From sequence record AP018399.1: 64,000 nucleotides of DNA; one strand, given 5' to 3'. Made by a program: the position numbers and the translations under genes. How positions within the stretch are numbered: the stretch's first letter is position 1; each line of letters starts with the position of its first letter. Positions 9,802-58,745 of this stretch are shown here, in pieces. Below the pieces are notes generated by a model, which made no database searches, was not told the DNA's origin, and saw nothing but the letters and a program-made list of their open reading frames with translations.

Positions 9802-10493
9802 CCAGTAATGTGCCATTGTGGTATGCTCCGGCTGGATTTGTTCGTGGGCAATTTGCTCCCATTATAACTAACCGTAGTTCTGGTAAGAGCATGTATACAC
9901 AAAAGCTGTTGCTTGATTATTTCAAGAATCAGGTAACCACCACTGGAACCTCCGTAGTAACCGCAACACAGTCCCCGAATATGACCAGCACTTCTAACAA
10001 CATAGTTTTTGATTTGGAAAGTAGTGCAATTTCTACATTTCTTGATAAGATTCGTGGTGCATCAGGTTTCTCTAAAATGGAAACCGACGATTCCTATTTT
10101 GAAGATTTCGAACAATACATTATGAGGGCCAAGCGCATTTTCGATTGCCGCTCCTGCCTTCGTAAGCCCACACAGGGAGAAAGCCTTCATGGTGAAGCTG
10201 GACTGGAAAGCATACGAGTTCGTAGCACCGACACCATTTTCTACTATCGTAAGGAAATTGATGACGATGATGGTTCCGAGTATTTCGACGTTGCCTTCCT
10301 CAAAATCGGAGACGTGGTATTTCCCCTACTCACGGAACAAGCCGATTATAATGAGACGGACATTTTCCGGAACCACTTCACTCCCGGATTCGAACACCTA
10401 GACAATCTTCCTTTTCATCGACTGATGGAAGAGATTATTGAGTTTTACGAAGATTACGCAACCGATTATGGCATCCAACATGGCACTACTTAA
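9798..10493 (+). CDS. array paralogue 12 with N-terminal extension
   Basis: EEIIEFYEDY; extra ~95 aa Thr/Ser-rich N-terminus. Confidence 0.75.
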   Translation: MTSNVPLWYAPAGFVRGQFAPIITNRSSGKSMYTQKLLLDYFKNQVTTTGTSVVTATQSPNMTSTSNNIVFDLESSAISTFLDKIRGASGFSKMETDDSYFEDFEQYIMRAKRIFDCRSCLRKPTQGESLHGEAGLESIRVRSTDTIFYYRKEIDDDDGSEYFDVAFLKIGDVVFPLLTEQADYNETDIFRNHFTPGFEHLDNLPFHRLMEEIIEFYEDYATDYGIQHGTT

Positions 10494-17023: not shown

Positions 17024-17031
17024 CATAAATA
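17024..17031 (+). promoter_or_regulatory. T4-like late promoter
   Basis: CATAAATA. Confidence 0.6.
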
Positions 17032-18779: not shown

Positions 18780-18977
18780 ATGAAAAGTCTTGAACGTGCT
18801 GCCATGTATGAAGCCCTTACCGGGGCTATCGAAGAGATTGATGCGATTTTCGAAGAACACGGCTTTAAGCCAGAAGACTTCGACCCGGACAATCTAGAGT
18901 TCGCTGATATCCCCGACCTAGAAATCGCTAAAGTGTACAGCCATGTACACGGGTTAAAAGAAGCAGTAGAAGGATGA
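18780..18977 (+). CDS. hypothetical acidic protein
   Basis: 65 aa, ends at terminator. Confidence 0.65.
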   Translation: MKSLERAAMYEALTGAIEEIDAIFEEHGFKPEDFDPDNLEFADIPDLEIAKVYSHVHGLKEAVEG

Positions 18978-19006
18978 AAAAAGCCCGCTTTCGCGGGCTT
19001 TTTCTT
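18977..19006. terminator. bidirectional intrinsic terminator
   Basis: A6-GCCCGC-tttc-GCGGGC-T5. Confidence 0.9.
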
Positions 19007-19653
19007 TACCATCTTGCTGCGGTTTGTTTCGGGTAGTACAAGCTCTGTACGTCGTCGTTGTAACCCGCGTCGATAATGACCGGGCTACCGTTGTAGATAC
19101 CCCAATTCTTGATGTTGCTGTAGTCGGCAATGTTCGGGTCATAGCTGCCGACATAATCCATCATGGCTTCGGCCAATTCTGATTCGCCATTTACCTTCTT
19201 GGCATCACCACGAGGATAGCGCTTTCCGTGGTATTCACTTGCATAAGCCAATAGGTCGTTTAGCTGTCCACCACATGCCTTGACGAAATCGGCTTCTGTG
19301 GCCTTCTTTGCTAGTTCGGTATGAATCCAAGTAGGTGTTTCATTCTTGGTATCATAGTCGATTAGGGGAATGAACAGTCCAAGCGTGTTCGCATAGTGGT
19401 CGTTAAGCATCTGGGCTTCCACTTCGTTCTGTGCCATACCCTTGCGGTTCTTGGCAACCTTAAGAACAGTGTCACGGCCCTGATACGGAATCACAAATGC
19501 GATTCGTGAACTGCCAGTACCTAGACGCTTAGCGCGTTCCTTGGCGTATGCTACGCGACGAGCGAATGGCACACGGTCGTTGTACATAGCATCGTCCCAA
19601 TCGTCTGGGAGCGGTGCTTCCGATAGGAATTGAGATAGGCGTACTTGCTTCAT
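19006..19653 (-). CDS. protein kinase-like fold protein
   Basis: LGTGSSRIAF (Gly loop), VLKVA, NEVE, DxxxxxNWG, PVIIDAG; start MKQVRL at 19653 (TAATG). Confidence 0.75.
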   Translation of the reverse strand: MKQVRLSQFLSEAPLPDDWDDAMYNDRVPFARRVAYAKERAKRLGTGSSRIAFVIPYQGRDTVLKVAKNRKGMAQNEVEAQMLNDHYANTLGLFIPLIDYDTKNETPTWIHTELAKKATEADFVKACGGQLNDLLAYASEYHGKRYPRGDAKKVNGESELAEAMMDYVGSYDPNIADYSNIKNWGIYNGSPVIIDAGYNDDVQSLYYPKQTAARW

Positions 19654-20057
19654 TATTCGTCGTCTCGGTCTAGGTGACGTGGAGTACGCTGTTCCCAACG
19701 TGCCCAACGGTTCTTCATACGGTTCTCGTGGTGCTTACCGTGATGGATTGATTCTGGATTCAAGTAAGAACCCATGTCATCAAGGTAGGAGTCCACTTCA
19801 TCCACAACAGCCGATAGCTTGTCACGCTGCTTACGTAGCGCTTGACCTAGCTCATGAATACCATTTTCGATATTGCGCGGGTCGTTGTGCATCTGCTTGA
19901 AGGTTTCAGTGAACGGACCATTCAAGAACTCATAGAATTCCTTGGTTGCGCGCTTCACTTCCTGTAGAGCCTGAGCGGCCTGACCAATCTGGAAGTCTTC
20001 CTTTAGGTTGCGCTGGCGGGCTTCATCAAACAATTGGTTCAATTTCTTCTTCGACAC
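19653..20057 (-). CDS. hypothetical coiled-coil late protein
   Basis: GTG 20057 after GAGG; late promoter GATAAATA at 20080-20087. Confidence 0.7.
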   Translation of the reverse strand: MSKKKLNQLFDEARQRNLKEDFQIGQAAQALQEVKRATKEFYEFLNGPFTETFKQMHNDPRNIENGIHELGQALRKQRDKLSAVVDEVDSYLDDMGSYLNPESIHHGKHHENRMKNRWARWEQRTPRHLDRDDE

Positions 20058-20099
20058 GGTAAAATTCCTCAGTTCAACGTATTTATCAGTCCAAGGCCA

Positions 20100-20128
20100 T
20101 TGACATACCCTTAACACCCTGCTATAAT
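20100..20128 (+). promoter_or_regulatory. sigma70 consensus promoter
   Basis: TTGACA-17-TATAAT. Confidence 0.85.
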
Positions 20129-21068: not shown

Positions 21069-21104
21069 AAAAAGGAAAAGGGGCCAATGGCCCCTTTTCT
21101 CTTT
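21069..21104. terminator. bidirectional intrinsic terminator
   Basis: AAAAGGGGCC-aat-GGCCCCTTTT. Confidence 0.9.
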
Positions 21105-22863
21105 AGTCAAGTACGCATTCATTGACGAAGTAGCCAACTGCGTTACCCGGTTCACACCAGTCATATTGCTGTTGCTCACCCAAACGTTCTGCGTTACATG
21201 GATTTGCGGTTTCATATGCTGCGGCCTGTTGTTGCGCACCGTTCAACGTCGGGATACTACCACATGGCTGCTGCTCATTGAAGCCTTGGTTCACCACTGT
21301 ACGCCATACATAAGCGCCAGCCGATGGTGACGGAGTTACCGAAGGTGCCGGTGTTGGTGTAGGCGTTACGGTACGTGTCGGAGAAACGGCTGGCGTTGGT
21401 GACACTGTAGCAGTTACGGTCGGCGTGACAGTCTGTGTAACAGCCGGAGTAATCGACGGAGTTACCGAAGGCGTCGGCGTCATTGTACGTGTGACTGTCG
21501 GTGTGACTGTAGACGTTACCGAAGGTGTTACAGACGGAGTAACCGAAGCAGTCATCGTGATGGTCACTGTCGGTGTAATCGTCGGTGTCGGAGTTGTGGT
21601 CAACGTCGGTGTTGGTGTAACCGTCTGCGTTACCGTTGGAGTTACGGTCGGTGTCACTGTCGCAGTCGGAGTGAATGTCGGAGTTACCGATGGGGTCGGT
21701 GTGTTTGACGATGTTGGTGTAGGCGTAATCGTCGGTCCCGGCAAATCGAAGATGGTAATGGTCAAACGTTCGCTGATAGCAGCATTGATGTTGAACGGCT
21801 TTGGTTCCGAACATTCATTCAATCCATCGAAGCCAGCGCCAGTTTCGTAACCGTAGATATTGATTGTCGTCTCTGATGCAGACGAATCTTCCAATGTACC
21901 GTCAACCACAAGCACGGTAGCCTGCTGTGCAGTATCGTACCAAGCCTGTGTAATCTTCCACTCACCGTTGTTGGTGTCGGAATCTCCTTCAATCCACACC
22001 TTGCGGTTCGGAATGAAGCCTGTGCGAAGCTGGATAGCACCATGTACGCCGTCCACTTCTGAATCGGTTAGGCGAGCCTGCGTGTCTGGTGTAAGCTGTA
22101 GAACGGTATCACCACCAACGATACTGAATCCGTCAATCTGGTAGACACCATTGTTCTTGTTGTCCGCATCCACAAGGATACTGCCAAGCGTGGTAGCAGG
22201 TAGGGTGCGGTTCAAAGTAATTGTCGTGATGCCACCAGCAAAGGTAGCGGCCAGTACACCGTAGTGACCATCATTGGCTCCGGCATTCTGGATTTCAAGG
22301 TTAATCTTGGCAAGGAACTGAGCCGCGTGGTCACCGGAGATAGTCACAGTGGTTCCGCTGGCCGTCAGCATTTGATATGAATTCTTACGGACCACCCAGA
22401 ACATTTCGTGGTTAGCGAAGTACGCACTCTGGTCACCAGCAACGACGATGCTCCCTAGGTTGGGAATCGACTTGATGTTGAGGTAGGTGTCGTACAGGTG
22501 GGAGCCGGGGACAACAATCTGGCCGGATGCTCCGGCAATGCTGTCAACTGGAAGCGTGACTAGAAGGTCGCTATTGTCGAAGATAAGGCCGAAACCGCCG
22601 ATACATTCGAACAGGTCACAGCAATCAAGAGCATCGAAGCCGCAATCGTCATCGAAGTTCAAGCCGAAGCCAACACCCTTACACAATGGGTCGTTAGCCA
22701 AAGTGATTTCGAAACTAGGCGTTTCTTCGAATTCTACACTGATTTCTTCGCGGAAGACGTACTGCTCAACGATTTCAAGGATTTTGGTGTGGTACGGTTT
22801 AATGTCACCAAAATACTTGATGAAGGAGTCAATAGGTCGGACGATTGATGAGTCGCAAGCCAT
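21103..22863 (-). CDS. virion structural protein with long Pro/Thr/Val tract
   Basis: late promoter CATAAATA 22889-22896; N-terminal KPYHTK; ~140-aa (V/T)TP(S/T) tract; Cys-containing C-terminal cap. Confidence 0.7.
   Translation of the reverse strand: MACDSSIVRPIDSFIKYFGDIKPYHTKILEIVEQYVFREEISVEFEETPSFEITLANDPLCKGVGFGLNFDDDCGFDALDCCDLFECIGGFGLIFDNSDLLVTLPVDSIAGASGQIVVPGSHLYDTYLNIKSIPNLGSIVVAGDQSAYFANHEMFWVVRKNSYQMLTASGTTVTISGDHAAQFLAKINLEIQNAGANDGHYGVLAATFAGGITTITLNRTLPATTLGSILVDADNKNNGVYQIDGFSIVGGDTVLQLTPDTQARLTDSEVDGVHGAIQLRTGFIPNRKVWIEGDSDTNNGEWKITQAWYDTAQQATVLVVDGTLEDSSASETTINIYGYETGAGFDGLNECSEPKPFNINAAISERLTITIFDLPGPTITPTPTSSNTPTPSVTPTFTPTATVTPTVTPTVTQTVTPTPTLTTTPTPTITPTVTITMTASVTPSVTPSVTSTVTPTVTRTMTPTPSVTPSITPAVTQTVTPTVTATVSPTPAVSPTRTVTPTPTPAPSVTPSPSAGAYVWRTVVNQGFNEQQPCGSIPTLNGAQQQAAAYETANPCNAERLGEQQQYDWCEPGNAVGYFVNECVLD
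21315..21740 (-). repeat. low-complexity VTP(S/T) coding repeat
   Basis: imperfect 12-nt units (gtcggtgtcact-like). Confidence 0.85.
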
Positions 22864-24287: not shown

Positions 24288-25001
24288 TCAACGCTTCTTC
24301 TTGCGAGAAGTGAGTTCCGCCTTAGCCTTACGTGGGTGCTTGGCTGGGGCTTCTTCAACTTCCGTGGCTTCTTCGACTGTGCTTTCGCCAGCCATCGGAA
24401 GAGCGTCACTTTCAGAGCCTAGGATTTCACGATTGCCAGACTTCATGAGACGGTCTAGGACTTCATCTGAACTGAACCAGAAATCCTTCCCATCAAGCAT
24501 AGCAGCAATTTCTTCCTTGGTCATGAGGTCGGCGTACAGAGCGTAGGCAATGTGGTCGAAATAGCGTTCGGTGAACTTCACCTGTTCGCGAACATCCGAA
24601 CCCTTTCCTTCAACGCCGTGGCTGTACTTGTGAACCATGAACGCACCGAACGGATTGATGATGTGCTTATGGCCCGCTAGGAAGATGATGGTAGCCGCTG
24701 AACAGGCTTCGCCTTCTAGGCAGGTAATCACAGTACCATTACAGTTCTGGATGGCGTTGATAATCTGAATCGTGGTGTATAGGCTACCACCGACGCTGTT
24801 GATGTAGATGAAAACGGTGTCGTGTTCTTCGACGGTCTTCAAGGTCTGCACCAAATCCAGATACTTTTCTGGCCCTTCAATGACCCCAAGGATATAAAAG
24901 TGATGGAGGGTCACTTGGACAACTTGCTTATAATTCGGAATCTTCTCCGAACCAATCTGAGGCAACAGTAGTAGCTCTGTATCTTCACTCGTGTTCTTCA
25001 T
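24288..25001 (-). CDS. clpP: ClpP-like serine protease
   Basis: INSVGG, GEACSAATIIFLAG, FMVH, DFWFS; late promoter GATAAATA 25040-25047. Confidence 0.8.
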   Translation of the reverse strand: MKNTSEDTELLLLPQIGSEKIPNYKQVVQVTLHHFYILGVIEGPEKYLDLVQTLKTVEEHDTVFIYINSVGGSLYTTIQIINAIQNCNGTVITCLEGEACSAATIIFLAGHKHIINPFGAFMVHKYSHGVEGKGSDVREQVKFTERYFDHIAYALYADLMTKEEIAAMLDGKDFWFSSDEVLDRLMKSGNREILGSESDALPMAGESTVEEATEVEEAPAKHPRKAKAELTSRKKKR

Positions 25002-34823: not shown

Positions 34824-35001
34824 TGTCTAGTTCCTGTCTGATTTTCTTAATTGATTTACCATTCTTGGTCAGTTCGACCGAAATGGTGATGGTACTGCTA
34901 TTGTCCGAAGACTGCAACAGGGTGATACGACCCTGTTGCATGAGTTCCTTCACAGTACGATACATTTCCAATTGCTTTGAATCGTCGTCTGAAAGAGCCA
35001 T
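34804..35001 (-). CDS. hypothetical protein
   Basis: TAATG-coupled to acb1-like gene. Confidence 0.65.
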   Translation of the reverse strand: MALSDDDSKQLEMYRTVKELMQQGRITLLQSSDNSSTITISVELTKNGKSIKKIRQELDSGYGYR

Positions 35002-35573
35002 TATTTATCGTCCTCTTTCTTCTCGTCGTCCTTGTCATCGCTGGCATCCTTGGCCCAATCAAGGTTGAGGGGTTCGTAATACTCTTCGGCGATTTCAATC
35101 TTGTCGATGTGTTCCTTAATGTCGAAGTCCTTTGGAATCTGCCAGTCTTCGCCCACGTCGTAACACAGGGTTGCATGAATCTTGTATTCATCGTAGTCGT
35201 ACTGTGCCCCGTATTCCTTGTTGAAATACTCGTGACGTTCCTTCATTTCCGGACAGTCGAAGCGCAGCACTAGAGCGCGACTACCAGACTGCGTAGGGAA
35301 GATTTCAAGCTTGGTTGGAGTACCAATCCAAGGCTCTTTCATCTTACCGTGGATGGTGAAGTCCTTGAACGGCTTGCGACTGTACACGATGGTGCAGTGC
35401 ATCTTCTTACGTTCGACACGGTTTTCCTTCGAAATACCCAGAGTTTCCGCTAGCTTGGCTAGCTTGTTCTGAGTGGCCTTTGAAAAGTGTACCGCAATGT
35501 ATGTTCCGTCTTTGCCGAGTTCGGTGATTCGTGTTTCCTTCTCAAGCAAAATTTCTGCCAAATGTCTACCCAT
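35001..35573 (-). CDS. acb1: 2H phosphodiesterase, Acb1/T4 57B-like anti-CBASS nuclease
   Basis: GxYxAxxFS, HCTIVYSR, GAxxDxDxYxxHATLCYDVG, EYYEPLNLDWA match T4 57B as I recall it. Confidence 0.82.
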   Translation of the reverse strand: MGRHLAEILLEKETRITELGKDGTYIAVHFSKATQNKLAKLAETLGISKENRVERKKMHCTIVYSRKPFKDFTIHGKMKEPWIGTPTKLEIFPTQSGSRALVLRFDCPEMKERHEYFNKEYGAQYDYDEYKIHATLCYDVGEDWQIPKDFDIKEHIDKIEIAEEYYEPLNLDWAKDASDDKDDEKKEDDK

Positions 35574-50287: not shown

Positions 50288-50845
50288 TTAAGAAAGTCCT
50301 TCATACTTGTTTCGTTCCTCATTCAAATCCGCAGGCTTGTACGTGTCATCAAAGACACCGCGTTCAATACGGTAGACTTCACCAGCAATGGCCTCTTCCG
50401 GGTCCGTGACCGGACAGGCTAGAAAGTCACCTTCCTTGCATAGCATGTCTTCATCCCAACTGGCTCTGAACTTGAAGGTCGGACCCTTGTATTCGTAGGC
50501 ATAGATTAGACCCTTCGCCTTGTAGTCTTGGAATTCGTCAGTCAGTTCCTTGTCCACTTCGTAGCGGTCATTGAACTTCTTGGTTGAAACGACATACATT
50601 TCGCCCTTCGGACCCTTGATGACGACTTCACCATCCTTCACGGTCTTCTCGGTTTCCTTCTCTCCGTCAATCTCGGTGACAACGTGTTCACCGGGCTTGC
50701 CGTTTCTGGCCTTGAATGTTCCGGACTTCTTGTACAGCTTCACGTCTTCATCGTGAGCGGCCAGCTTCTTGTTCATTTCACCAATCATGGTGTCCTGTGA
50801 CTTTACCGGTCTGGTACCTTCGGTGATAATGTCATGGAGTTTCAT
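50288..50845 (-). CDS. PGDYG-like protein
   Basis: YKK..AR..GE...G...V..GPKGExY...KFxxRYE; SW..GDFL..YRIERxxFxxTY. Confidence 0.6.
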   Translation of the reverse strand: MKLHDIITEGTRPVKSQDTMIGEMNKKLAAHDEDVKLYKKSGTFKARNGKPGEHVVTEIDGEKETEKTVKDGEVVIKGPKGEMYVVSTKKFNDRYEVDKELTDEFQDYKAKGLIYAYEYKGPTFKFRASWDEDMLCKEGDFLACPVTDPEEAIAGEVYRIERGVFDDTYKPADLNEERNKYEGLS

Positions 50846-53839: not shown

Positions 53840-54009
53840 TAGCCGCACTTGTTGGCTTCAATCACGATACGTTCCACGTCTGGTAGACACATCGAACACC
53901 CCAGCGAAGCTCCTGTTTCATACATGAGTTTCGTAAGCGTGTTGTGACCATCCGCGATGGCCTTCTTCAAGTCGTCTTCCGTCAACCCTGCACAAATACA
54001 CACAAACAT
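53794..54009 (-). CDS. bfd: bacterioferritin-associated ferredoxin-like [2Fe-2S] protein
   Basis: VCICxG...GCxxC; TTGACA-17-TACTAT promoter. Confidence 0.85.
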   Translation of the reverse strand: MFVCICAGLTEDDLKKAIADGHNTLTKLMYETGASLGCSMCLPDVERIVIEANKCGYQAFTKLDIPVIKDF

Positions 54010-54038
54010 AAAAAGAAAGCCCTGATTACTCAGGGCTT
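54010..54038 (-). terminator. intrinsic terminator
   Basis: AAGCCCTGA-gtaa-TCAGGGCTT plus T tract. Confidence 0.8.
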
Positions 54039-54063
54039 ATAGTATTAAGAATTGTTCTTATTG

Positions 54064-55320
54064 TCAAGCGCTTTCGTCACCGACGTATGGATTCACCGCG
54101 TTGGCTAGCCAGTTGATTAGCTTCGGCGGGAAGAAGTCGGTTAGTGGTGACATTAGGGTTTCGAAATAAATCTGAGCCTTCTTCACACCTTCCAAATCGT
54201 TTGTCGATAGGTCTTGTAGAATCTGGTTCAAGCAATCTACGGCCTGCTGCTTAATGCTCTTGTCGTCATAACCCTTGTCATCGTAGCGTAGGATGGCCTG
54301 ATTTAGCTCGGCGATACGCTGCTTGACTTCTGCCTTCACGGCAGCAGGTAGACGAATCTTCGTTCCCTGTTCGAACTTCACGCCTGAGTTCTCAGTCGGT
54401 CCATTCTGGTAATCGACTTCTACTTCTGTCGGGGTCAAATCCTTCTCAAGAATACGGGCTACGATATCTTCAACAGACTCTTCGACTGCTCCTGCCTTCT
54501 TAGCAACCCATTCTTGGGCCTTTGATACCGGCATAGCAAACCATGCTCCCGGACCATTATGCCATGTATTCTTATCGTATGCACGGCTTTCTGCTTCTTC
54601 CTTTGAAGAATAGCGAATGGCATCTTCCAAGTTTCCGCCACGTTCTAGGCCAAGGAATGACCAAATCTGTCCATCGCCGCCAACGGCAACAACGTACTCT
54701 TCACCAACGGCTTCTTCAACCTTCACTTCTACTTTAACGGTCTTCTCGTCGCCTTCCTTGTCCTTCTTTTCAGAGTCGTCCTTCTTGTCTTCCTTCTTAT
54801 CGTCAGAATCCTTGTCGTCCTTCTCTTCCTTATCGTCATCCTTCTTCTCGGACTTCTTTTCGTCCTTGTCGTCTTCCTTATCGTCCTTCTTGTCCTTTAG
54901 GAAAGCAGGCTTGTCGTCATCCTTGTCGGAATCCTTTTTGTCTTCCTTGTCGTCGTCCTTCTTGGAATCCTTGTCATCGTCCTTTTCGTCCGAATCCTTT
55001 TTGTCTTCCTTGTCGTCGTCCTTCTTGTCGTCGTCCTTGGCTTCTAGCACAGGCTCGACGGCACAAGCTTCTTCGGATTCCTTGACTTCCGACTTCTCGG
55101 CGTCTTCTAGCTTCTTTAGGCATTCGTTGACTAGCTTCAACTCTTCTGCTGCATTCTTGTACTTGAAAGATGCACGAGCGGCAGTAGCCATGATGCCTTG
55201 AAGTTCTTTCTTCACGGCCTGTAGGCCAGCTTTGTCGCGGTCAGCATACTTCTTCTCACCGAAGGCTTCGGTAAGCGTGTGGATGCCAGATAGTTTGGTT
55301 AGACGTTCGATGCTATTCAT
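54064..55320 (-). CDS. highly charged probable prohead core/scaffold or internal head protein
   Basis: several [LV]xE-[AS] sites; ~100-aa Asp/Lys tract; KPAFL. Confidence 0.6.
   Translation of the reverse strand: MNSIERLTKLSGIHTLTEAFGEKKYADRDKAGLQAVKKELQGIMATAARASFKYKNAAEELKLVNECLKKLEDAEKSEVKESEEACAVEPVLEAKDDDKKDDDKEDKKDSDEKDDDKDSKKDDDKEDKKDSDKDDDKPAFLKDKKDDKEDDKDEKKSEKKDDDKEEKDDKDSDDKKEDKKDDSEKKDKEGDEKTVKVEVKVEEAVGEEYVVAVGGDGQIWSFLGLERGGNLEDAIRYSSKEEAESRAYDKNTWHNGPGAWFAMPVSKAQEWVAKKAGAVEESVEDIVARILEKDLTPTEVEVDYQNGPTENSGVKFEQGTKIRLPAAVKAEVKQRIAELNQAILRYDDKGYDDKSIKQQAVDCLNQILQDLSTNDLEGVKKAQIYFETLMSPLTDFFPPKLINWLANAVNPYVGDESA
54740..55040 (-). repeat. low-complexity D/K coding repeat
   Basis: repeated DDDKEDKKDSD units. 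Confidence 0.85.
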
Positions 55321-58040: not shown

Positions 58041-58745
58041 TTACTGTGGTAGGCCGACGATGTGTAGGAACTGCACGTTGCCAGTGGTTGAAGTATCGGC
58101 ACGCTGCTGGCCGTCCTTCGAATCTTGAGTGCCGGGGTCAATGTCTGTACCGGCTAGGATAGCACGGCGAATCTGTGTTTCACGCTTAATGTCGTTGCCG
58201 ACATTGTAAATCCAAAGCTCTTCGAAGTTGCCGTCGTCCATCTTACGCTTGAACACTAGGTTCGCACCACGGACTGTACGGATTTCACCTTGGAAGTCTG
58301 GGTTGCTGTCAGCAGCATCCGGGTCGTTTGTGGCAATGTCGTCAGCCTGATTCTGCGACATATCATCAAAGTCCTGCTCTTCTTCATCAGAGTTTAGAAC
58401 TTCGTCGCCAACATCGAAGGCGAAGTCATCAGCGGATTCGCCACCTTCTTCACCACCACCAAGCTCATATCCGCCACCGTCGCCAATGGCTTCGTCACCA
58501 AGGGCACCTAGTTCAAGCGATTCATCACCGAACTCAAATGGTTCGTCATCAAGAGCTAGGTTCGCTAGGTCTGAGAAATCCAACCCACCGACAACATCGC
58601 TGTCGTCATCCTGATACTCGCCACCTAGTAGCGAATCAAGGTCTAGGTCCGCCAGAGCGTCTAGGTCAAGTTCCTCGTCAGTGTCGAGGTTAAAGGCACG
58701 CACATCTTCAAGGAGGGCTTTCAAAGTTTTCATGTTAGATTCCAT
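58041..58745 (-). CDS. acidic late (probable virion) protein
   Basis: GATAAATA at 58760-58767; MKTLKALLED; Asp/Glu-rich linker then globular C-terminus. Confidence 0.7.
   Translation of the reverse strand: MESNMKTLKALLEDVRAFNLDTDEELDLDALADLDLDSLLGGEYQDDDSDVVGGLDFSDLANLALDDEPFEFGDESLELGALGDEAIGDGGGYELGGGEEGGESADDFAFDVGDEVLNSDEEEQDFDDMSQNQADDIATNDPDAADSNPDFQGEIRTVRGANLVFKRKMDDGNFEELWIYNVGNDIKRETQIRRAILAGTDIDPGTQDSKDGQQRADTSTTGNVQFLHIVGLPQ

Follow-up and report, generated by a model that had tools for sequence, protein, structure and literature searches.

ORF170 of Xanthomonas phage XacN1: a predicted minimal protein-kinase-like enzyme with a T4-type capsid-targeting leader as a candidate head-packaged effector

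Xanthomonas phage XacN1 is a jumbo myovirus of X. citri with a genome of 384,670 bp, and this work concerns one of its genes, open reading frame 170 (ORF170), as a possible source of a kinase-like enzyme that is carried in the phage head. The gene lies in the stretch of 64,000 nucleotides analysed here, bases 62001–126000 of record AP018399.1, which is designated as the window and to which positions refer unless stated otherwise. ORF170 (P0001, BBA65318.1) is an open frame at 19006–19653 on the minus strand that encodes 215 amino acids (aa) and is annotated in the record as “predicted ORF”. It is preceded by ORF171 (19653–20057, minus strand), the first gene of this two-gene operon, which encodes a 134-aa helical protein without assigned function. 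Base 19653 is common to the stop codon of ORF171 and the start codon of ORF170 (TAATG), and this one-base overlap bears out the coupling to an upstream gene that was claimed in the original prediction for this locus.

The elements of a kinase active site follow one another along the ORF170 polypeptide, and their conservation was counted in an alignment of 120 homologues with a mean column identity of about 51%; the codons of these elements all lie on the minus strand. The Gly-rich loop LGTGSSRIAF (residues 44–53; 19495–19524), situated between strands β1 and β2, retains G47 and R50 in all 120 sequences and G45 and S48 in 119 each. Codons 65–79 (19417–19461) lead from the β3 lysine K65 of the VLKVA motif (19459–19461) to the αC glutamate E79 of the NEVE motif (19417–19419), both of which are invariant (120/120); in the AlphaFold2 model K65 is close to the end of strand 60–67 and E79 is inside helix 70–84. 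The catalytic-loop equivalent D177-x5-N183 (19105–19125), in which N183 immediately precedes strand 184–187, is acidic at position 177 in every homologue (D in 114, E in 6) and keeps N183 in 118. Immediately after strand 190–193 comes the DFG equivalent D195-A-G197 of the IIDAG motif (19063–19071), which follows a family motif D-(A/L/I/V)-G with D195 and G197 each present in 119/120. These are the same motifs that had been listed in the original prediction, and all are present and invariant or nearly so. The K65-E79 pair and the putative metal site are placed by their position in the model. Outside the canonical kinase set R50, N69, Q75, N76, D99, D101, W109, and W184 are invariant as well. 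Conservation is concentrated in the N-lobe and the catalytic strands, whereas the helical region 118–174 and the tail vary and the length of one loop differs between 13 and 33 residues among homologues; such a pattern, with catalytic segments kept and the region 118–174 drifting, fits an enzyme, and ORF170 is probably an active nucleotide-dependent transferase.

The AlphaFold2 model, built on the family alignment, reached a predicted local distance difference test (pLDDT) score of 91.2 and a predicted template modelling (pTM) score of 0.85. Its N-lobe consists of β1 (42–46), the Gly loop, β2 (50–57), β3 (60–67), αC (70–84), β4, and β5 (109–113), and its C-lobe of three helices, a short turn with D177, N183, two strands, D195-A-G, and a last short helix, which is the order expected for the protein-kinase-like (PKL) fold. 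Foldseek search against the PDB returned at least 204 matches at E ≤ 1e-3, and all of the matches listed were kinases. In the VIA-wide structure search, which is independent of Foldseek, the top 50 matches were all protein-kinase-like (Z 6.8–9.0, 117–157 residues aligned) and included ULK4, FAK, BRAF, APH(2''), Rio1, Rio2, Bud32, ArkI, and Ark1. Weaker support comes from the BFVD structural neighbours, among which there are annotated T7-type kinases, and from the ESM Atlas, where the nearest named clusters are Phage_T7_kinase and Pkinase. Sub-threshold Pfam matches of relatives to the kinase clan were also obtained (Pkinase, E 0.002, in one relative; YrbL, E 0.001). Since all of the matches belong to one fold and the motifs stand in the same order, the assignment is firm: the minimal protein-kinase fold that had been proposed for ORF170 stands after structure prediction and both structure searches, and the protein almost certainly has a kinase-like fold.

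The same alignments indicate where this fold is cut short. They mostly end at model residues 195–215, most commonly at 201, and the ORF170 chain itself ends about 20 residues after D195, so ORF170 stops where other kinases start the activation segment. Judged by the model, its N-lobe is complete, whereas its C-lobe extends no further than the DFG equivalent, and the substrate-binding part of the C-lobe is gone. ORF170 gave no above-cut-off match to Pkinase (PF00069) and has neither an activation segment nor helices αF–αI. Searches of the PDB by sequence and by profile gave no kinase assignment for ORF170, and their best matches (glycolipid transfer protein, designed repeats) were rejected as chance.

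The family to which ORF170 belongs is extensive. A word-based search returned 505 homologues of about 210 aa, none of which carries a functional name, and a profile search returned 2,436 cluster representatives (50% identity) at E ≤ 1e-3, with 292 at E ≤ 1e-30. ORF170 is assigned to phrog_4301 (function unknown), and no Pfam match was obtained for ORF170 or for 79 family members; weak matches to DUF5619 in 13 members (best E 0.0015) were not interpreted and not used. Among isolated phages the gene was found only in XacN1, Xoo-sp13, Slicko01, and Slickus01, while the remainder of the carriers are uncultured phages, many of them represented by contigs of 100–315 kb; one copy of the kinase-like gene is present per genome. 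Near-identical DNA in public sequencing runs came from freshwater, wastewater, and soil metagenomes only, with no infection time course among these runs, and the literature searched contained no paper on the family and no virion proteome for Slicko01 or Xoo-sp13. In four polypeptides of 444–923 aa (P0122, P0123, P0213, and P0217) two to four kinase-like profile stretches were observed, and P0122 and P0123 have their own (L/I)-x-E P-L-P junction ahead of each of two copies.

The time of ORF170 expression is indicated by an ATAAATA late-promoter-like element at 20080–20086 on the minus strand, which stands 29 nt ahead of the start of ORF171. The late promoter of T4 reads TATAAATA. The window contains 16 ATAAATA copies against 4.4 expected, mostly situated 20–45 nt upstream of gene starts on the coding strand. 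When counted genome-wide, in the non-redundant 318.7 kb of XacN1 with crude gene calling, 36 of the 56 copies stood in sense orientation 15–50 nt ahead of a called gene, against two in antisense in the same windows. The genes preceded by the heptamer include those of the tail sheath and the sheath stabiliser, ORF275 as the first gene of the operon that contains the major capsid gene, ORF302, and ORF268, as well as the portal gene when annotated starts are used; genes with sigma-70-type promoters, for example, that of the late sigma factor, are without it. ORF303 of XacN1 matches the T4 gp55-type late sigma factor (phrog_234, E 7e-36). In relatives ATAAATA is found 21–30 nt upstream of the kinase-like homologue (Slicko01 and the metagenomic contigs L012, L013, and L014) or upstream of the ORF171-like gene (Xoo-sp13 and contig L015). 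Owing to the position and strand bias of the element, the gp55-type sigma factor, and the recurrence of the same heptamer in relatives, the reading of a late operon, already made in the original prediction, is well supported, and the sharing of the element with structural genes agrees with it; ORF170 is probably expressed late. In the window ATAAATA was also noted ahead of ORF164, ORF174, ORF175, ClpP-like ORF177, ORF179-180, ORF189, ORF221, ORF225, and ORF232, and copies stand at positions 17025, 20086, 22895, 23140, 25046, 27141, 37567, 56483, 58766, and 63663.

The first 12 codons of ORF170 (19618–19653, minus strand), ending in L10-S11-E12, form a predicted capsid-targeting propeptide with cleavage predicted before A13, where the protein continues with APLPDDWD. 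When 118 homologues were anchored on the invariant P-L-P-x-x-W-D segment, P1 of the leader was Glu in 116, P3 was Leu or Ile in all 118, P4 and P7 were mostly Phe, Leu, Ile, or Tyr, and the distance from Met1 to the Glu was 8–19 residues; the model has a pLDDT of 53 over residues 1–10. According to the T4 record, the leaders of the internal proteins IPII and IPIII possess an aromatic P7, Phe at P4, Ile at P3, and Glu at P1, followed by Ala, and the spacing of the leader in the ORF170 family is the same. In T4 the first 10 residues of IPIII are enough for packaging (a review of Black's work, PMC9026906), while residues 4 and 7 of the T4 capsid-targeting sequence (CTS) serve for targeting and residues 8 and 10 for processing (PMC9026906); further published sites of the gp21 protease are ITE-6 and LTE-619 in Alt. 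A gp21-type protease (PF03420) was found above cut-off in XacN1, Xoo-sp13, and Slicko01, and the prohead protease of XacN1 is ORF297 (phrog_207, E 5e-58). The leader that had looked cleavable at first reading thus agrees over residues 1–12 with both the gp21 cleavage rule and the targeting pattern of T4, and packaging of ORF170 into the head through this leader appears rather probable.

Other XacN1 products also have CTS-like N-termini of the form M-(K/R)-x-x-x-hydrophobic-L-x-E within the first 9–13 residues and have no assigned functions. Their genes lie at 190362–191417 (minus), 238329–239063 (plus), 174593–175045 (plus), and 53927–54760 (minus) of the XacN1 record and at 50288–50845, 58041–58733, and 35001–35573 of the window (all minus). 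Four of the CTS-like genes have their own ATAAATA, and a 277-aa product weakly matches “virion structural protein” PHROGs. These products are candidates for further head cargo.

The strongest support for packaging is provided by gene context in other phages. Eight consecutive genes of Alishewanella phage Slicko01 (OQ508956.1; 966–6636 of locus L003, corresponding to 85888–91558 of the record) share a leader of 12–13 residues ending in (L/I)-x-E and differ in their bodies, and the homologue closes this array. One gene of this array encodes an ART-PolyVal ADP-ribosyltransferase (E 2e-11). When the 141-kb Slicko01 genome was scanned with the strict leader pattern, six array genes matched and none outside the array. 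A second case is a leader trio at 10001–13596 of L010, a metagenomic contig with a “UFOVP116_121” protein, where the kinase-like gene and two downstream genes of Amidoligase_2-domain proteins (403 and 564 aa) start with the same six residues, which suggests that this leader system also carries amidoligases as cargo. Two long metagenomic contigs have the homologue upstream of the gp13 neck gene, either immediately behind the major capsid gene (L012) or one gene further on (L014).

Fusions extend this picture. Among the best 146 newly returned profile matches 64 were at least 280 aa long, and many long relatives open with a nine-residue leader M-R-A-(K/T/S)-(E/D)-F-(I/L)-x-E. In these the leader is followed by ART-PolyVal, one or two GNAT, AAA_33 P-loop, or DUF6934 domains and then by the kinase-like domain; for example, P0152 consists of the leader, ART-PolyVal (E 4.6e-25), and the kinase-like domain, while in P0125, P0136, P0156, and P0163 GNAT precedes the kinase-like domain. 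Head modules, leader-sharing arrays, and ART-PolyVal fusions together point to a packaged effector. Separately, four paralogues of the Slicko01 array were seen to share conserved H-x-T and S-T-A-R motifs, and they may be further ADP-ribosyltransferase-like enzymes.

Taken with the fold, the conserved residues, the promoter, and the leader, this context favours, with moderate confidence, the reading that ORF170 is a prohead-processed, injected minimal protein-kinase-like phosphotransferase. The virion-delivered kinase of the original prediction is to this extent supported as far as it can be computed, its activity, cleavage, packaging, injection, and substrate being the parts that we infer. In such a scheme the gp55-like sigma factor would transcribe ORF171-ORF170 late from the ATAAATA element, and the 12-residue leader would dock the precursor on the prohead core in the manner of the T4 capsid-targeting sequence. 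The gp21-like protease ORF297 would then cut after E12 and leave a 203-aa enzyme starting with APLPDDWD, which would be ejected with the DNA at the next infection and draw on host ATP for the phosphorylation of host targets, which are most likely proteins. Its action would come before any phage gene expression, with host takeover or blunted defences as the effect. In catalysis the G45-x-G47-S-S-R50 loop and the K65-E79 pair would hold ATP, N183 and D195 would bind Mg, and D177 would act as the base. Because the αF–αI substrate lobe is absent, the enzyme may be promiscuous, or its targets may be read through the variable helical region 118–174; for a protein as the substrate rather than anything else the chances are considered even.

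Several observations weigh against this reading. The Z values of 7–9 are rated as middling by the VIA-wide tool itself; at the sequence level the Pfam, PDB, T7 gp0.7, and Kinase-PolyVal searches gave no significant link to any kinase; D-x5-N has one residue more between Asp and Asn than the canonical D-x4-N; and no conserved His stands ahead of D177. In XacN1 alone, with crude gene calling, CTS-like N-termini are enriched only at a borderline level in late operons (4/56 versus 10/452, p = 0.057), so that the argument for packaging has to be drawn from the comparative data and not from this genome by itself, and the XacN1 paper, which includes a gel-band virion proteome, mentions ORF170 in its text and supplement only in the ORF table and does not name it among virion proteins. 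Moreover, (L/I/V)-x-E before P-L-P is kept at the internal domain junction in 39–40 of 41 fusions, and [L/I]-x-E-(A/T/M)-P-L-P could consequently be part of the fold and not a cut site; the internal junction may be either a protease site itself or merely the start of the fold. The last three of these points, together with the VIA-wide alignments, which often begin at model residues 12–13 so that the segment packs on the N-lobe, speak for a late cytoplasmic kinase that is never packaged and acts in the producing cell on phage assembly or lysis or on host proteins, with L-x-E-A-P-L-P-D-D-W-D as the first structural element of the domain. This explanation is judged unlikely, since the residues before L-x-E follow the T4 targeting pattern in their hydrophobic P4 and P7, length of 8–19 residues, and low pLDDT, in Slicko01 and L010 the leader is common to unrelated neighbour genes, fusions connect the domain with ART-PolyVal, which is a marker of injected effectors, and the gene adjoins or nearly adjoins the capsid gene in L012 and L014.

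The nature of the substrate gives rise to another explanation, which applies to a packaged and an unpackaged enzyme alike: ORF170 could be a small-molecule or nucleic-acid kinase, such as APH or the tRNA kinase ArkI, or could perform AMPylation or glutamylation as SelO and SidJ do. The absence of the activation segment and of the peptide-binding αF–αI lobe is in its favour, as are the APH(2'') score, which is on par with those of protein kinases (Z 8.6 versus 9.0), the matches to the archaeal RNA kinases ArkI and Ark1, the additional invariant residues outside the kinase set, the richness of XacN1 in tRNA and RNA-repair genes, and the recurrent GNAT-kinase fusions, which recall the bifunctional AAC(6')-APH(2''). 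However, ORF170 also lacks the C-terminal helical subdomain by which APH and choline kinases bind their substrates, its fusion partners ART-PolyVal and GNAT are interpreted as protein-modifying domains of polyvalent proteins (PMC5512222), and the nearest named feature clusters are those of protein kinases; a non-protein target is tentatively regarded as improbable to about the same degree as a kinase that stays in the cytoplasm. A catalytically dead kinase-fold protein that forms a structural or scaffolding part of the head core would explain a late gene with a propeptide-like leader, found in the head module of some phages and accompanied in XacN1 by ORF171, which is small and helical like T4 core proteins. 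It is nevertheless very improbable: across 120 sequences with an identity of about 50% the canonical nucleotide-binding and catalytic positions are invariant and the remaining C-lobe has diverged, as is expected of an enzyme and not of a scaffold.

A packaged phosphotransferase of this kind can be compared with several known systems. Polyvalent proteins, whose architecture the multi-domain relatives of ORF170 show, were argued by Iyer, Burroughs, Anand, de Souza, and Aravind in 2017 to be packaged and delivered with the DNA, and they include a kinase clade that has no C-terminal subdomain and retains its active-site residues (PMC5512222). The ORF170 family resembles this Kinase-PolyVal clade (PF18762) in the loss of the C-terminal subdomain with the ATP-binding and phosphotransfer residues kept, and likewise in its occurrence both as a stand-alone protein and in fusion with ART and GNAT domains. 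At the same time the PF18762 profile had no match at E ≤ 10 in XacN1, Xoo-sp13, and Slicko01 and was not among the 25 families shown in the Pfam scan of the family, and the signature residues differ: the published Glu before strand 2 has as its counterpart the invariant R50, the Gln in the last N-lobe strand corresponds to H111 (118/120, Gln in two) in strand 109–113, and the His-insert-Asp signature of the catalytic loop was not seen. Kinase-PolyVal is reported mainly from (pro)phages of Verrucomicrobia-Chlamydia and Bacteroidetes, whereas the carriers of the ORF170 family are large T4-type myoviruses and its leader is T4-like. Membership in Kinase-PolyVal is not detectable, as both the profile and the signature residues fail.

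The T7 kinase (T7K, gp0.7) had been cited in the original prediction as an enzyme which acts on many host proteins and can blunt defences, and this agrees with the literature, where it was shown in 2026 to phosphorylate very many host proteins and by such mass phosphorylation to disarm many defence systems (PMC13645617). Like ORF170, it is a phage-encoded atypical kinase-fold enzyme, and T7-type kinases are present both among the structural neighbours of ORF170 and in its nearest named feature cluster. However, T7K is early and is made after entry, while ORF170 is a predicted late gene and has a propeptide-like leader, and T7K has DPV for DFG and a C-terminal shut-off/DNA-binding domain (PMC13645617), in contrast to ORF170 with D-A-G and no extra domain. 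It belongs to a PHROG family other than phrog_4301, and hhalign of the family profile with the single T7 gp0.7 sequence gave a non-significant probability of 0.6%. With this result and D-A-G instead of DPV, membership in the T7 kinase family is not detectable either.

With T4 IPI-III and Alt the ORF170 family shares a propeptide of 10–20 residues that ends in [L/I]-x-Glu and has hydrophobic targeting positions, and also the arrangement of one leader on unrelated proteins, late genes, and a gp21-type protease in the genome. Alt is itself a packaged, injected host-modifying enzyme. No kinase is included among the described cargoes IPI-III and Alt, and packaging and cleavage have been demonstrated in T4, whereas for ORF170 they are predicted.

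Rio, Bud32, and ArkI are likewise small (about 170–260 aa) kinase folds without an activation segment, aligned with ORF170 at Z 7.2–8.1 over 117–146 residues, and the G-D-(Y/F/L) start of the ORF170 catalytic loop is reminiscent of their motif H-G-D-L. No relationship to them can be detected by sequence; ORF170 is cut back further, ending about 20 residues past the DFG equivalent, and has one residue more in the catalytic-loop spacing, and their biology is that of ribosome and tRNA maturation. The likeness to APH(2'') and AAC(6')-APH(2'') consists of the structural match (Z 8.6) and the GNAT fusions of relatives, while the helical substrate-binding subdomain is missing in ORF170 and the sequence similarity amounts to one weak APH_6_hur match in a single member (E 0.078). 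In concept ORF170 would work like Pkinase, Kinase-PolyVal, and T7K enzymes; it is closest to Rio, Bud32, and ArkI in fold and size, and its proposed delivery would follow the logic of T4 Alt and the internal proteins. The result is a large family without a name, which is distinct from Kinase-PolyVal and T7K and is joined to a T4-type capsid-targeting leader.

A broader interpretation is possible and is offered tentatively. T4-type and jumbo phages may possess an extensive, as yet undescribed set of effectors loaded into the head, to which the kinase-like domain would belong as one module beside ADP-ribosyltransferase, acetyltransferase, amidoligase, and P-loop modules. All of these would be addressed to the prohead by the short M-(K/R)-x-x-(E/x)-F-(I/L)-x-E leader, and precursors with several domains would be cleaved by the prohead protease at the conserved inter-domain (L/I/V)-x-E, each of them being a polyprotein from which several enzymes are set free in the capsid. 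The kinase would in that case be the first one known to reach the bacterial cell in finished form together with the phage DNA. Phage kinases have lately gained in importance. T7K needs expression first, while a kinase delivered along with the DNA could be at work ahead of any response of host sensors or nucleases, and an injected ORF170 would be added to the short list of known injected phage enzymes, for example, T4 Alt and the N4 virion RNA polymerase. The leader rule may serve as a simple marker for finding other packaged effectors, and ATAAATA is usable as a late-gene marker in this poorly annotated group of jumbo phages. With 203 aa the predicted mature enzyme is small enough for a convenient minimal kinase scaffold, from a family that has no Pfam model.

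The partner gene ORF171 gave weak matches only in the Pfam and PHROG searches, and among carriers of the kinase-like gene only XacN1, Xoo-sp13, and contig L015 have an ORF171-like gene beside it. Of the neighbouring products in XacN1 only ORF171 has an N-terminus similar to the ORF170 leader; the similarity is weak, and the Glu is not kept in Xoo-sp13. The two genes are oriented opposite to the genes on both sides, and their neighbourhood consists mostly of nucleotide metabolism and replication genes. Upstream, a sigma-70 promoter with a 12/12 consensus and TG extension (20100–20128, plus strand) belongs to a divergent 5'-nucleotidase/GNAT operon; standing back to back with the ORF171-ORF170 operon, it marks an early-versus-late contrast at this intergenic region. 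Downstream, a putative bidirectional intrinsic terminator (18977–19003) separates ORF170 from the convergent ORF169, with a GC stem at 18983–18988 and 18993–18998 and an A-run and T-run on either side; it was read by eye from the sequence and was not listed by the consensus scan.

Two further genes of the window were noted. ORF174 (21103–22863, minus strand) has a late-type promoter and encodes 586 aa with a stretch of about 170 residues of Thr/Pro/Val/Ser-rich repeats, and its product could represent a surface protein of the virion or a fibre-like one; contig L015 contains a 961-aa relative with the same N-terminus. The ClpP-family protease gene ORF177 (24288–25001, minus strand) carries a late-type element, and contigs L010 and L015 also have a ClpP gene only a few genes away from the kinase-like one.

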